Assembly: GCF_041956535.1 (NCBI RefSeq)
Contig: NW_027192195.1
Coordinates: 283,807 to 347,806, forward strand
Origin: Calcarisporiella thermophila CBS 279.70
Taxonomy: Eukaryota > Fungi > Calcarisporiellomycota
Reading direction: 5' to 3'
Length of the DNA stretch: 64,000 nucleotides
This document shows positions 45,201 through 50,186 of this stretch, piece by piece. Within the stretch, counting starts at the first letter, position 1; each line of letters opens with the position of its first letter. Made by a program: the position numbers and the translations under genes. The notes below the pieces were generated by a model. It was given only the letters and a program-made list of their open reading frames with translations. It ran no database searches and was not told the DNA's origin.

Positions 45201-48200
45201 GAGATATGCTTGGTATAAGGTTGCAATGGCAAACACTATCCTTCGTACTGCCTTTGTCTCAACACAAGCAGGTGTTTTTCAGCTCCTGCTTAAGACTCCT
45301 CCAAAAGTATTTGAAAATTCTCTGACATGGTACCCAGAAGAAGCAGACGAACTTCAAAAGGAGTTCCTGGCAGCCGACCGCCATCGTGGCTTTAATTTGG
45401 AAGATATCTCCTTTGCTAGGATTACAATTGTTCATATCGAAGGAACTAATTGTTATCGACTCTTCTGGATCATGCATCACTCTATCATAGATGGATGGTC
45501 TATTTCACTTCTACTTGATGATATGTTGAAGGCATATCGTAATGTCGAAGTGGAGGCTCGACCTCCATTCAAGAATCACGTTGAGGCAATTTTATCTGCT
45601 GACGTTGAGAATGCTAAAGAATACTGGAGATCTGTGTTTGAGGGTGCAACTCTGCCAGAGCCTCTTAAGCTGACTGATGGCAATACTGATCCCGAAACCG
45701 CTGAGCCAATCACTCGGGCGTATGACTTGGGGATTACGCTGAATGAACTTCACGCCTATTGCAAGGATATCGGAGTGACTCCTTCCAACTTCCTTCGATC
45801 TCTTTGGGCCGTCATTCTTCGGCACTATACCCGATGTGAGGATGTAACCTTTGGATGTGTAACCATTGGTCGGGATGAAAGCGTTGAGGGCATTACTAGG
45901 TATGTTGGATTTCGTATTTGAATAGAAGTGTTGGTCTACATTTTTTGGTTATAAATTTGATTGCAAATTTTTCTAACAATCGTTATCAATGCGTTATAGA
46001 ATGATAGGAGCGCTGATCAATACCATCCCGATTCGAGTCGTGTTGAAAGATTCGATGACTTTCAACGAGCTCCTCCAAGCAGTACAAGATTTCCATGTCA
46101 TTTCTCATCCCCACAGCCACGTTGCACTTAGCGATATTAGACGTTGGACTGGTCTTCCTTGGACACAGAAGATGTTCCCAACCATATTCTCTTTTCTCAA
46201 TTTTGGGCTACCACAATCATTTATTGGAGGGATAGAAGTTGGCTTTAGAATGACTGAAATTGAAGATCTCGAAGAGAACAATGTACGCTCAACCCAAAAC
46301 CAACATAAGCAATACAGTGGGATTGACTACCCATTGATTATCACAATTGATGCTGCAGGAGACAATATCAAGGCAATTTTAACTTTCAACCCTAGCATGG
46401 TTGGGATCAAAGTATTAAATAGGATGATGGCTAAATACCAGGATATTATACGAATGACCTTGTGCCATTCAACGGAAACCCCACAATTATTGGTTGACCT
46501 AGATCGGCTAAACAATAATGAAGAATCAGATCTTCAAAAATTTAGCGTTGGGGAAAATTATACCGTTCCATTTGAATGCTTACACCACGGCTTTGAAGAA
46601 ATGGCACAGCACTATCCAGAAGCTATTGCTGTCGAAGATGACGATAGAGCTATTAGTTACTTGAACCTCGATAAACGCGCTAATATAATTGCTCGCACTC
46701 TGCGACAACAAGGAGTCATTCCTGGAGTAACCGTTGGTCTTGTGATCTCGCGTTCCATTGAGATGATAATTGGGATCCTAGGTATCCTAAAGGCTGGTGG
46801 TGTCTACGTGCCAATCGATGCAGCATTTCCTTGCAAACGCATTGCATCCATCTTAGAACATGCATCCTGCTCGGTCTGTTTGACAACGACAAAAGACAAG
46901 AATGCAATTCCTCCAGAGTATTCACATAGGATCATATTCATCGATGGACAAAATTGGTTATCTGAGGATGCCAGCAAACCTGTAGAATTAACGAAAGGAG
47001 AGGATCTTGCATACATTATGTAAGTGAAATGTTATGTTCTTACTGTATATATTTTTACACTATGGCTGACATATTTAAATATAGCTTCACGTCGGGTACA
47101 ACAGGTAGATCGAAGGGGGTCATGATTCGTCATAATGGTGTGATTAGCAATATCATGGTACACCCTATTACTTCACTCCTTGGTCCTGGAACTCGAGTCG
47201 GTCAGTTTACAGCAATAGCATTTGACTCTGCTGTTGCAGACATATTTTCAACTCTGTCCACTGGGGCCACACTTGTTCTTCAAGGATCAGATTTCTTTAC
47301 CACATTAGCAAATGTGGATGTGGCAACTTTGACTCCGACTGGACTACAGCACTTGGATCCAAACGACTATAGAAACATTAAGATTGTTAACGCGATCGGA
47401 GAAACTTGTCCTTCCAGTTTGGTTGATCGTTGGGGAGATAGGGTCAAATTCTTCTCAGATTATGGTCCCACCGAGATATCTATTTATTGTTCTTGCTCAG
47501 ACCCACTTCGTCCAGGCACGCCAGTTACTATGGGGAAAGTACTACCAAATATGAGAGTATACGTATTAGATAATTATCTTAAACCAGTTCCCATTGGAGT
47601 CAAAGGACAAATATATGTTGGTGGTATTGGGGTTGCACTGGGATACCTTAACCTGCCTGAACTCACCTCGGAGAAATTCCTTGAAGATCCATATGGACCA
47701 TCCGGGAGTAGGATGTATGCCACTGATGATTATGCTCGTTGGCTACCCACTGGAGAGTTGGAATTCTGCGGCCGAAAAGACGATCATGTTAAACTGAGAG
47801 GATACCGTGTCGAACTCCAAGAGATTATGATTGCAATGAATCAGTACCCATCAGTTGAAAACTCGGTGGCAATAACTAAAGATAATGGTATCTTTGGCTT
47901 TGTTACTCCTATACACACTGACACCAACACTCTACGAGAATTTTTGTTCGATATTCTGCCCGAATATATGGTCCCCAGTACTATCATTGCATTAGAACAA
48001 TTTCCGACTACTGCAAATGGTAAAATAGACAAGTCCAAACTTTGTGAAATAGTAGCACAGCGAACAGATACACCACGACATCCGATCACCGAAAACCATA
48101 AATTAAATGAGGTCAATAAGCTTCTCTTACGGCACCCGCATATTTGTGATATCGTAAGTACCGTTTATCACAACGTGCATCAAGAAGAAACAATAGTAGC

Positions 48201-50186
48201 CTACTTTGTTCCTGAAACCAACGCGTGTATCGATGGTTTATTTTTCTCGACGAAATGTGAGCACGGAAAAGAAACCGAATTTCTATTGGAGAGTGGATGC
48301 GAAGATAGCGTACATTTATTTACTACGGTATTCAAAAAATACTTAAAGTCAAATCTGCCAAATCATCCTATTCCCTCTGGTGAGTTAAATACTTTGTCCT
48401 GAGTATGATTCGATTTAATTATATTTTAACCTTATATCTAGTGTTTATACCTCTGAAGAAGATACCGCTTACTCCTCAAGGGAAAATTGACCAAGATGCA
48501 CTTCCCCTCCCTGATACTTTGTCCCCTATTTCAGTGTCAATTGTTCCTGCAATTCAAGAAATGTCACTGACAGAGCAGATCATCCACGATATTTGGGTTC
48601 ACCTGCTTCCAAATCCTCCCAGACCATATATATCTCCAGACCTAAATTTCTTTGATTTAGGAGGGGATTCGATCCTTGCGACCCGATTAATCCTAGAACT
48701 AAGAAAGTCACACTTCAAAAATGCGCCCCTGAATTTAATACTTCGTGAACCAACTATATCTGGAATGGCAAAAAAGCTAGAGAAACTAAATGATGCTGGC
48801 TCTGGATGTGTGGAAAATGGAAGTAAAGCCATCGCCGCTGCAACAACTTCAATAGACGAAGGATTTAGTGACCATCTGGCCAGAAATAGACCATTTACTG
48901 CGGAATATGACTATGCATCTGAAATACCTGCCTTGATTAAAAGATATTTGCCAACATGTATCCCATTCCCTGAATCAGAAAAATCGTACGGGAAGACCTA
49001 TTTTCTTACCGGAGTAACAGGCTTTCTTGGTATTTTCATTTTAGAAACACTTCTCAAGCTGGACCCTTCAAGTCGCGTCATATGCCTTGTGCGCTCTAAA
49101 ACTCGAGAGGCTGCCATGGAACGTATAATTCAGGCGGCACAATCGCACCTAGTCTGGGAAAAAGAAGAATTCACTGCGCGTGTTGAAGCCGTGTGTGGAG
49201 ATCTAGGATCAAAAAAACTCGGTCTTTCAGACACAGAGTGGCAACACCTTTCACGAGATGTTGATGCAATAGTACACAATGGTGCACTCGTCCATTGGGC
49301 TTATACATATAACCAACTTTATCCTGCGAATGTTGAGGGAACAATGTGGTGCCTAAAGCTTGCTCTGACTTGCCGAACAAAAACATTTACCTTTGTAAGC
49401 TCAACATCAATGCTTGACACTGAATTTTATATGCAGCTCAGCGAAGAAATTATTAAAAGAGGTGGGCGCGGAATTAGTGAGAAAGACGATTTGGAGGGAA
49501 GCCGAGTGGGTTTAAAGAGTGGCTATGGTCAAACAAAATGGGTTGCTGAAAAACTAATTATGGAAGCTTGTGCTCGTGGAATGCCCGCAGCAATAGTAAG
49601 ACCAGGCTATGTACTTGGAAATTCGAAGACCGGAGTCTGCAATACCGACAACTTTATCTGGCGTCTAGTAAAAGGTTGCGTAGAGCTGGGTGCTGTACCA
49701 GATATACCAGAAGCAGTAAATATGTGCCCGGTTGACTATGTGGTAAAATGTATCGCGAAAGTCGCCATACGACCTGCACACGAGTTTAAACCGGATGAAG
49801 TAGTATTTCAAGTTACTCACCCAGCGCCATCGTTTACATTCAATGATCTTTTTGACTTTCTTCCTCTCTACGGATATGAGGTAGAACAGCATGACTATGA
49901 TAAGTGGCGTAATATACTCTTGGAATATACCTTGCGATCAAAGGAAAATGCTTTGTTCCCTTTGTTACCGGTATTACTCGATGAATCTCGTTCAGCTAAC
50001 AAATCTCCTGAGATCGACAACACCAATACATACCGACTTCTTCAAGGGGAAAATTCGCCTCGGATGACCGTAGACCTTGTGGGATTATATTTGGCCTATA
50101 TGGTGAGAATAGGATATATGTCAAAGCCCAGTAAAAGCGGTCTTAAATGCCTTCCAGAATTACCAGAGATATATACATTGATGTAA
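36252..50186 (+). CDS. Trimodular nonribosomal peptide synthetase: C(half)-A-T-E-C-A-T-E(inactive)-C-A-[Lys2-like Asub]-T-R; 11 exons, ~4,397 aa
   Basis: Introns at 36551-36616, 37541-37599, 39209-39291, 39537-39599, 41214-41314, 43899-43974, 44220-44285, 45900-45999, 47020-47084 and 48380-48441 join the ORFs in frame (13,194 nt). Motifs: three TSGTTG/YGPTE/NGK(I/V)D sets; three LGGDS; E1 HHLAVD, EGHGRE, RTVGWFT; C domains HHSIID(A/G)W; R domain GVTGFLG and [10 protein letters not shown]. Confidence 0.93.

Follow-up and report, generated by a model that had tools for sequence, protein, structure and literature searches.

Gene and module organization

A single intron-bearing NRPS gene occupies positions 36408–50186 (+) of the window, that is, the whole 64,000-nucleotide stretch of Calcarisporiella thermophila DNA analyzed here. 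It was recognized by exon-wise Pfam searches and corresponds to the public model XP_069254113.1 (P0001; VTP21DRAFT_9225), a protein of 4345 aa annotated as "uncharacterized." The exons of this model map to the window, all of its approximately 10 introns are canonical and its 4345 codons are open. Searches of the window were run exon by exon, with the exons not joined, while whole-protein work was carried out on P0001. The protein cluster to which XP_069254113.1 belongs has this one member, no ortholog being known. Upstream of the gene the DNA is AT-rich and holds few genes.

The domain order is C*(truncated C)-A1-T1-E1-C2-A2-T2-E2-C3-A3, followed by Asub'-T-R, with Condensation, AMP-binding and PP-binding domains in the assembly-line order of a modular NRPS. 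C-domain motifs are present as HHSIIDAWS (40789–40815) and HHSIIDGWS (45475–45501), and the T-domain Ser motif occurs twice as FFALGGDS and once as FFDLGGDS. The identity of E1 is backed by TIGR01720 (84 bits, cutoff 74.2). E2 scores 56 on this model, below the same cutoff, and is degenerate, reading HP in place of HH at 43999–44037 with loss of the catalytic second His; on these features it is probably dead. Parts of this gene do, in other words, tolerate decay. The last adenylation domain, A3 (46595–48042, +; Pfam, BLASTP), contains an intron (47021–47085) and possesses both its core and its own complete C-terminal subdomain, with motifs A8 (47770–47826), A9 (LPEYMVPS, 47956–47979) and the A10 Lys (FPTTANGKIDKSKL, 48001–48042). 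It is 67% identical to A1.

The modules had been described from the sequence as "bacterial-type," a reading which did not survive comparison. In a search with one module the nearest relatives were paralogs in the same genome (59–62% identity) and NRPSs of chytrids and Basidiobolus (35–38%), the bacterial homologs reaching 27–33%, and in the A-domain tree A1–A3 fall in an all-fungal clade (SH-aLRT 97). The paralogs P0386, P0399 and P0419 have modules 59–62% identical to those of this gene, an A-to-T linker with the same motif and a similarly low GC3. Both P0386 and P0399 terminate in C-A-T-FSH1, and P0419 carries FSH1 also, so that all three retain release by T-FSH1, a FSH1/LovG-like hydrolase, whereas FSH1 (PF03959) is absent from P0001, which has Asub'-T-R of LYS2 type instead. 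Because the paralogous NRPSs end in A-T-FSH1, this hydrolase end is presumed to be the original one, since replaced. Neither a relic of the displaced T3-FSH1 3' of the stop codon nor DNA flanking LYS2 was found within the window.

The junction and the LYS2-derived tail

LYS2 is a housekeeping lysine-biosynthesis gene specifying alpha-aminoadipate reductase, itself an NRPS-like A-T-R enzyme which stops at the aldehyde. At 48105/48106 the T-domain lead-in of module 3 switches to LYS2 sequence within one open exon, the frame running without a stop codon from 47086 to 48379. Upstream of the switch, what is left of the native linker between A3 and T3 and of the T-domain lead-in survives as CEIVAQRTDTPRHPITENHKL (48043–48105, +; alignment A2, A1/A3 BLASTP). 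Its last portion, HPITENHKL (48079–48105), aligns with APVTDKEKL of module 1, LPVTDKQKL of module 2 and the lead-ins of the paralogous NRPSs, and its final Leu is the last residue homologous to the remaining modules and the paralogous proteins. These all read ...P.TDKQKL followed by VVDLMA..SFFALGGDS; module 3 reads HPITENHKL followed by NEVNKLLLRHP, the latter corresponding to ELGEIDTHLSQHP of LYS2. On this alignment we regard the breakpoint as resolved to a single residue. The strings quoted in the preliminary description are all present where it placed them.

The first LYS2-derived element, designated Asub' (48106–48518, +), is a copy of the C-terminal subdomain of the LYS2 A domain, truncated at its N-terminus (TIGR03443 positions 713–801; own LYS2 from residue 762). 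It begins within the A8 motif (LGEID changed to LNEVN), the first ~15 residues of that motif being absent, and holds the LYS2-type insertion, A9' (LPNHPIPS, 48355–48378), the A10' Lys (TPQGKIDQDALPLPDT, 48471–48518, 3' of the intron described below) and the LPxP linker. A redundant subdomain with its own A10 Lys, as claimed earlier, is therefore real, with the refinement that the start of A8 is missing and that the element has diverged far more than true LYS2 sequences have: it is 37% identical to the species' own LYS2 overall (63% in the A9'–A10' part), against 72–77% among LYS2 orthologs over the same subdomain. With this globular remnant in between, the T domain lies ~135 residues past the A10 Lys of A3, a spacing which is unusual for A-to-T loading.

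The carrier (T) domain follows at 48582–48773 (+, Pfam PP-binding), with its phosphopantetheine Ser in FFDLGGDS (48648–48671); it is 62% identical to the T domain of the own LYS2. The thioester reductase (R) domain at 49002–50117 (+) gives 261 bits with PF07993 and 348 bits with TIGR01746 (cutoff 213) and is 65% identical to its LYS2 counterpart. Aligned with LYS2 it has kept the NAD(P)H motif GVTGFLG (49011–49031), FVSSTS (49392–49409) and YGQTKW, the YxxxK motif (49524–49541), such that the scores, the nucleotide-binding motif, the Ser/Thr and YxxxK all agree with a thioester reductase. The stop codon is at 50184–50186.

The tail is not a complete Lys2. On TIGR03443, the NCBIfam Lys2 equivalog, it scores 727.3 bits over model positions 713–1370 of 1390, below the cutoff of 1030.1; it lacks both the N-terminal domain of Lys2 and the A core that activates aminoadipate, and three NRPS modules are attached upstream in place of the single-module architecture of Lys2. 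The C-terminal 672 aa, made up of a partial Asub, the T domain, a linker and the R domain, nevertheless constitute a paralogous copy of this enzyme. Their best match is the LYS2 of the same genome, P0267 (833 bits, 100% covered), all other Lys2s giving at most 649 bits, and 676 aa are colinear with residues 762–1435 of the 1442 residues of P0267 (56% identity, 4 gaps). P0267 scores 1892.7 bits on TIGR03443 (positions 1–1375, cutoff 1030.1), which marks the donor parent as a true, intact LYS2. These two loci are the only strong LYS2 matches in the genome; there is no third. Judged by these scores the resemblance to LYS2 is far above chance.

The tail also shares an intron with LYS2. A phase-1 GT..AG intron of 62 nt (48380–48441, +) splits a Val codon G/TG (TCT G/gtgagt...ctag/TG TTT), and the own LYS2 has a 72-nt intron (TCG G/gtaagg...tgtag/TG TTT) at the same position, in the same phase and in the same codon. 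That such an intron might be common to both genes at IPS/VFIP had been foreseen. The LYS2 of M. alpina has no intron at that position. A cryptic donor, GTAAGT at 48154–48159, was considered together with the acceptor at 48441, by which most of Asub' would be spliced out; this combination is out of phase and gives no productive isoform.

Origin and age of the fusion

In the phylogenetic tree the T-R part of the chimera is sister to the Calcarisporiella LYS2 with 100/100 support, inside the LYS2 clade of Mucoromycota sensu lato. The branch leading to the chimera measures 0.74 and that to the own LYS2 0.17, the tail evolving ~4x faster than LYS2. Nucleotide identity between copy and LYS2 is ~60%; pS has reached saturation at 0.84–0.92, in contrast to a pN of 0.21 in the R domain and 0.30 in the T domain. 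No stop interrupts the 580 codons of the last exon, and of the 118 LYS2-invariant columns the copy retains 104. Because synonymous sites are saturated, pN is low, the exon is open and these columns are retained, the sequences indicate an old fusion followed by purifying selection on T-R. By the same comparisons it is the leftover A subdomain which appears relaxed, T and R being conserved.

GC3 of the copy is 0.34–0.37, similar to that of the NRPS body (0.35–0.44), as against 0.73 in LYS2. RIP (repeat-induced point mutation) was considered as the source of the low GC, but all of the NRPS paralogs have a GC3 of 0.36–0.45, so no burst specific to this locus is indicated. The shift looks rather like a settling of the copy to the composition of its adopted NRPS family.

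The preliminary description had proposed that T3 and the release domain native to the NRPS gave way to a recombined copy of the LYS2 3' region. The sister relationship to the own LYS2 (100/100), the colinear C-terminus, the shared intron and the paralogs with T-FSH1 bear this out, and on the sequence comparisons the recombination reading is strongly supported. We put at roughly 0.85 the probability that this is a real, old fusion of the 3' third of LYS2 to a trimodular NRPS, for which we propose reductive release of a tripeptide. As the sequences show it, a duplicate of the LYS2 3' third joined the last module of a fungal-type NRPS by in-frame recombination between exons and displaced the T-FSH1 hydrolase end usual for this family. 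The LYS2-derived part opens inside the A8 motif, includes the shared intron and finishes at the stop codon; in the NRPS the join coincides with the residue that opens T-domain helix 1. The fossil subdomain and the shared intron show that this duplication took place at the level of DNA.

One might suppose that there was no recombination with LYS2 at all, and that an ordinary NRPS T-R end resembles Lys2 through ancient shared ancestry. Lys2 is NRPS-like in its own right, and the terminal R domains of NRPSs from Piromyces and Polyrhizophydium likewise find in the Lys2 model their best-scoring match. The chimera, however, groups with the LYS2 of its own species several nodes deep in the LYS2 clade, shares an intron with it and carries an extra Asub piece with the LYS2-specific insertion, whereas identity to the R domains of bacterial and other NRPSs is just 27–36%. 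On this evidence such a reading is already contradicted, and we give it the least credence of any considered here. Hardly more probable is an artefact at the junction, either two misjoined loci or two genes, namely an NRPS that terminates with A3 and, next to it, an independent T-R gene. A separate Asub'-T-R product from an internal start is conceivable, but the junction lies within one continuous open exon, the genome has no third LYS2-like locus from which the tail could have come, and an NRPS module deprived of its T domain would be useless. LYS2 reads cannot have been joined here by mistake, since the copy is ~60% identical to LYS2 in DNA and matches the NRPS body in composition.

It is also unlikely, though less so than either of these, that the fusion is real and the gene a decaying relic without a product. 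The loss of the second His of E2 with its TIGR01720 score under the cutoff, the fall of Asub' to 37% identity, the AT-rich and gene-poor upstream region and the absence of a known ortholog would all be in keeping with decay. Against this, 4345 codons remain open over ~10 canonical introns, and pN in T-R is just 0.21–0.30 where synonymous sites are saturated; the T-domain Ser, the NADPH motif and YxxxK of R and 104 of 118 LYS2-invariant columns have been kept. The low GC3, being common to all of the paralogous NRPS genes, is no sign of decay here. Conservation of T-R after synonymous saturation argues for a working product.

Proposed reductive release and related fusions in other fungi

If the old fusion encodes a working synthetase, a tripeptide would be built on A1-T1-E1, C2-A2-T2 and C3-A3, and A3, whose own C-terminal subdomain is intact, would load the last residue onto the carrier domain derived from LYS2. 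Lys2 itself goes no further than the aldehyde, so NADPH-dependent reduction by the R domain of LYS2 origin would most likely free the chain as a peptide aldehyde. A tripeptide aldehyde is the probable product, this and the two-electron outcome being predicted from Lys2 biochemistry for an enzyme whose activity is presumed. The truncated second A subdomain would be non-catalytic, and may stay as a spacer or by capping the T domain at its N-terminus.

Release by a terminal thioester reductase is known from NRPSs such as myxochelin MxcG, aureusimine AusA, peramine PpzA-1 and the peptaibol synthetases. The chimera has the same C-A-T-R terminal logic, with an R domain over the cutoffs of TIGR01746 and PF07993, from which reductive release would be expected; the best solved match for this R is MxaA (225 bits). 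Unlike these enzymes it bears an extra truncated A subdomain between A and T, and its T-R lies outside the usual NRPS R lineage (27–36% identity), its origin being the primary-metabolism LYS2 of the host. The source of NRPS release domains, and the means by which function survives natural swaps, are open questions in both evolution and engineering; here both parents of the swap survive in one genome.

Two Mortierella NRPSs, P0152 (Mortierella sp. GBA30, three modules) and P0153 (M. alpina, four modules), both unannotated "hypothetical protein" entries, are similarly multimodular with a terminal T-R inside the LYS2 clade of their own lineage. Their T-R parts nest among Mortierella LYS2s (100/97), to which they are 70–77% identical, and a single origin of the Calcarisporiella and Mortierella captures is rejected (dlnL 145, p-AU 2.5e-60). 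The trees indicate that Mortierella captured LYS2 T-R independently. The host modules are unrelated to those of the chimera (29% identity), the Mortierella A domains grouping with bacterial ones, and the breakpoint is just 5' of T helix 1 without an Asub remnant, whereas the chimera keeps Asub'. In M. alpina the LYS2 and NRPS T-R parts are both intronless. Convergent changes at LYS2-invariant sites were not significant between the two captures (overlap 3 sites, hypergeometric p 0.18).

A full-text literature search yielded no account of NRPSs whose T-R ends derive from LYS2. Calcarisporiella and Mortierella together suggest that reductive release modules have been drawn repeatedly from an enzyme of primary metabolism. 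Such donation points to early-diverging fungi as a source of peptide aldehydes not yet characterised, and to fusion sites already validated in nature that could serve engineered NRPSs. The fuller proposition, that early-diverging fungi have repeatedly (at least twice, in Calcarisporiella and Mortierella) made LYS2 T-R an NRPS release module and that the chimeras are active peptide-aldehyde synthetases, we hold tentatively, at a little under even odds. If it is true, the chimeras are natural experiments which reveal two sites where fusion is permitted, one at the T lead-in/A8 motif and the other in the A-T linker just 5' of T helix 1, and an entire additional truncated A subdomain can be accommodated between A and T. 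Further captures may be represented by the NRPSs of Piromyces and the chytrid Polyrhizophydium, whose T-R ends are Lys2-like.

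Gene organization and origin of the modules

The window (contig 5, 283807–347806) belongs to a 28 Mb genome in 116 contigs of Calcarisporiella thermophila, an early-diverging fungus of the phylum Calcarisporiellomycota. The NRPS gene occupies window positions 36408–50186 on the plus strand and is interrupted by some ten short GT..AG introns. Its product, P0001 (XP_069254113.1; 4345 aa), is identical to the window's exons, is annotated only as "uncharacterized protein," and is the sole member of its own 90% identity cluster. Searches from the window were made with each exon separately, and whole-protein analyses with the public model P0001. 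Exon-wise Pfam analysis gave the order truncated C, A1-T1, Condensation-type, C2-A2-T2, Condensation-type, C3-A3, PP-binding, NAD_binding_4. Both additional Condensation-type domains belong to the epimerisation type (E1 and E2). E1 has an intact HHLAVDL motif (39316–39354) and, with 84 bits, passes the TIGR01720 cutoff of 74.2, whereas E2 scores 56 bits and carries HPLVVDN (43999–44037) in place of HHLAVDL or HHxxxDG; judging from these features it is probably inactive.

At the N-terminus (36246–36554, and from 36408) the protein has just the C-terminal half of a condensation domain, with a weak Pfam match to positions 192–276 of 456, an arrangement like that of the truncated starter C domains known from Mortierella NRPSs. 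Modules 1 and 3 share an intron position inside the A3 core motif (AYI/IFTSGTTG; 37545–37591 and 47021–47085), as do the two E domains after ...GDSVE and ...ENGIE (about 39500–39580 and 44220–44300). These homologous positions suggest that the modules were duplicated later than the introns were gained. Upstream, GC content swings sharply between 24000 and 36000, from 56–63% at 24–28 kb to 35% at 34–36 kb, and the 28–36.4 kb stretch adjoining the gene is ORF-poor. No tailoring genes flank the NRPS.

The preliminary description called the modules bacterial-type, which was not borne out. The genome itself holds their closest relatives, the paralogs P0386, P0399 and P0419 (59–62% identity), members of a family of at least eight loci. 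This expanded family lies on contigs C2, C3, C6, C25, C37 and C52 (loci L009–L019); its modules are 58–65% identical, and several loci end in an FSH1/LovG-like hydrolase. Beyond these, module 2 is nearest to NRPSs of chytrids, Basidiobolus and Omphalotus (35–38% identity, versus 27–33% for bacterial NRPSs). In a quick A-domain tree, its sample picked by similarity to the query, A1–A3 and the paralogs fall within an all-fungal clade (27 rows, 97 SH-aLRT), alongside domains from chytrids, Basidiobolus, Dimargaris and Omphalotus. The clade as a whole may still go back to bacteria at a deeper level.

The junction and the LYS2 identity of the C-terminal part

The C-terminal subdomain of A3 is its own and complete, with A8 at 47770–47826, A9 at 47956–47979 and A10 at 48001–48042, followed directly by CEIVAQRTDTPRHPITENHKL (48043–48105). 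All modules of P0001 and the terminal modules of its paralogs align to a common pattern, ...NGK.DK.KL...P.TD(K/R)Q(K/R)L and then (V/I)(V/I).LMA.VL...SFFALGGDSIS; past the lead-in Leu, module 3 reads NEVNKLLLRHPHI... instead. Homology between A1 and A3, at 67% identity, stops exactly at this Leu. The junction is therefore 48105/48106, where it had been placed before, within one open exon (47086–48379). As described previously, a second A-subdomain, Asub', follows that of A3 with its own A10 Lys; Asub' is truncated.

The last 672 aa of P0001 score 727 bits on the NCBIfam Lys2 equivalog TIGR03443 (model positions 713–1370 of 1390), versus 346 on a generic thioester-reductase model and 397 on MxcG, in keeping with the Lys2-like strings noticed earlier. 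The T-R exon has just two strong matches in the genome, itself and a contig 10 locus (61% identity). The latter encodes the genome's own LYS2, P0267 (TIGR03443 1892.7, cutoff 1030.1). BLASTP aligns P0001 3672–4345 colinearly with residues 762–1435 of this 1442-residue protein (56% identity, 74% positives, 4 gaps). Among 5.8 billion proteins it is also the best match (833 bits), ahead of Glomeromycotina Lys2 proteins (at most 649 bits, 44–48% identity); ordinary NRPS R ends are only 27–36% identical to the T-R of P0001. The public P0267 model (L005:6230–6335, minus strand) reads GDLGRCVFFFFPLSLNLVEC where orthologs have GDLGRY.PDGNVEC, and its third intron appears mis-spliced in the annotation.

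The A10-T-R region was placed in a 53-row tree (IQ-TREE, LG+C20+F+G4 by PMSF) of 33 named LYS2 proteins from eight fungal groups, LYS2-length representatives, early-fungal NRPS ends and a bacterial-type T-R outgroup. The NRPS end groups with its own LYS2 (100/100), inside a Glomeromycotina, Mortierellomycotina and Mucoromycotina LYS2 clade and not with ordinary NRPS reductases; a quick 71-row tree agrees. Branch lengths are 0.74 for the NRPS copy and 0.17 for LYS2, a roughly fourfold higher rate in the copy. LYS2 was the donor and the NRPS the recipient, since the same LYS2 architecture is found in all fungi and the extra A-subdomain piece only in the NRPS.

Age and mode of the fusion, and the predicted product

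Copy and LYS2 are 49–60% identical in DNA, and only 31% of third codon positions agree; where these differ, LYS2 has G/C and the copy A/T at 317 sites, the opposite at 58. GC3 is 0.73 in LYS2, 0.34–0.37 in the copy, 0.35–0.44 in the NRPS body and 0.36–0.45 in all paralogous NRPS genes. Nei-Gojobori pS is saturated (0.84–0.92), and pN is 0.21 for R, 0.30 for T and 0.42 for the first Asub' exon. T and R retain 62% and 65% identity to LYS2, as high as cross-phylum LYS2 orthologs (56–64%), and the copy keeps 104 of 118 LYS2-invariant columns. Asub' is only 37% identical (72–77% between orthologs), its first 40 residues 33% (78–93%), yet the A9'-A10' stretch adjoining T retains 63%. The fusion is therefore old; T and R have been kept under purifying selection, and the leftover Asub' seems largely freed from it. 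An assembly that had wrongly joined reads of the NRPS and of LYS2 would show the exact sequence of LYS2, which these figures exclude.

The intron predicted to be shared at IPS/VFIP is present in both genes, 62 nt in the NRPS (48380–48441) and 72 nt in LYS2, splitting the codon after IPS and VPS, respectively, at the homologous residue and alike as G/TG. From there to the stop codon both genes are intronless. M. alpina LYS2 has no intron at this site, so it is not universal in LYS2. The shared intron points to DNA-level duplication rather than a retrocopy. On the LYS2 side the breakpoint lies 21 codons within an exon, so the two genes were joined exon to exon rather than through an intron.

Two of the paralogs, P0386 and P0399, have a C-A-T-FSH1 hydrolase terminus, and FSH1 is found in P0419 as well; T-FSH1 is therefore most likely the ancestral end of the P0001 gene. 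Neither a T-FSH1 relic nor LYS2 flanking DNA was found downstream of the NRPS. The proposal that the native T3 and release end were replaced by a LYS2 copy is thus supported by the sister placement, the shared intron and the paralogs.

The T Ser is retained, as are the R motifs GVTGFLG, FVSSTS and YGQTKW. A3, whose subdomain is complete and includes an A10 Lys, should adenylate and then load the LYS2-derived T. Asub' begins at LGEID, lacks the first ~15 A8 residues and is hinged to no A core; it would be a non-catalytic spacer, still bearing the LYS2 LPxP linker ahead of T. The spacing of ~135 residues from A3's A10 to T is unusual and casts the most doubt on this mechanism. With E1 intact and E2 degenerate, epimerisation would affect residue 1 but not residue 2. 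Because Lys2 reduces its substrate by two electrons, to the aldehyde, a tripeptide aldehyde is by analogy the likeliest product.

LYS2-like ends in other early-diverging fungi

Terminal-reductase NRPSs and domain shuffling in NRPS evolution are both well known. Within the accessible papers we found no account of a host LYS2 giving rise to an NRPS release module, or of these Calcarisporiella or Mortierella genes. A survey of Mucoromycota clusters labelled 29 clusters of its LYS2 family as NRPS and ascribed the overlap to condensation-domain hits (PMC8070225).

Two unannotated Mortierella NRPSs, P0152 (Mortierella sp. GBA30; A-T-C-A-T-C-A-T-R) and P0153 (M. alpina; four modules and R, C-terminal part at L006:12309–14756), also have Lys2-like T-R ends, 70–77% identical to Mortierella LYS2. 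They nest among Mortierella LYS2s beside those of M. alpina and GBA30 (100/97; further nodes 96/86, 96/95 and 100/100). Their native A9-A10 runs to ...LDP and then into TQLAIHTIWKQLLPSSPT-WIPLTENFFDLGGHS, near-identical to Mortierella LYS2. Unlike that of Calcarisporiella, this clean breakpoint lies just ahead of T helix 1, so no Asub remnant occurs. Nor are the host modules related (29% identity), the Mortierella A domains grouping with a bacterial NRPS. A tree constrained to hold the three NRPS ends in a single clade is 145 log-likelihood units worse (p-AU 2.5e-60); because the group was chosen once the tree had been seen, the formal test is weakened, although the size of the effect is not. 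By these comparisons the Mortierella capture was independent of that in Calcarisporiella.

The Lys2 model is also the best scorer for the T-R of P0156 and P0158 (Piromyces sp. E2) and P0166 (Polyrhizophydium stewartii), which may be further captures; in the trees, the T-R ends of NRPSs from Piromyces, a JGI source and Polyrhizophydium form long branches close to the base of the LYS2 clade, in no resolved order.
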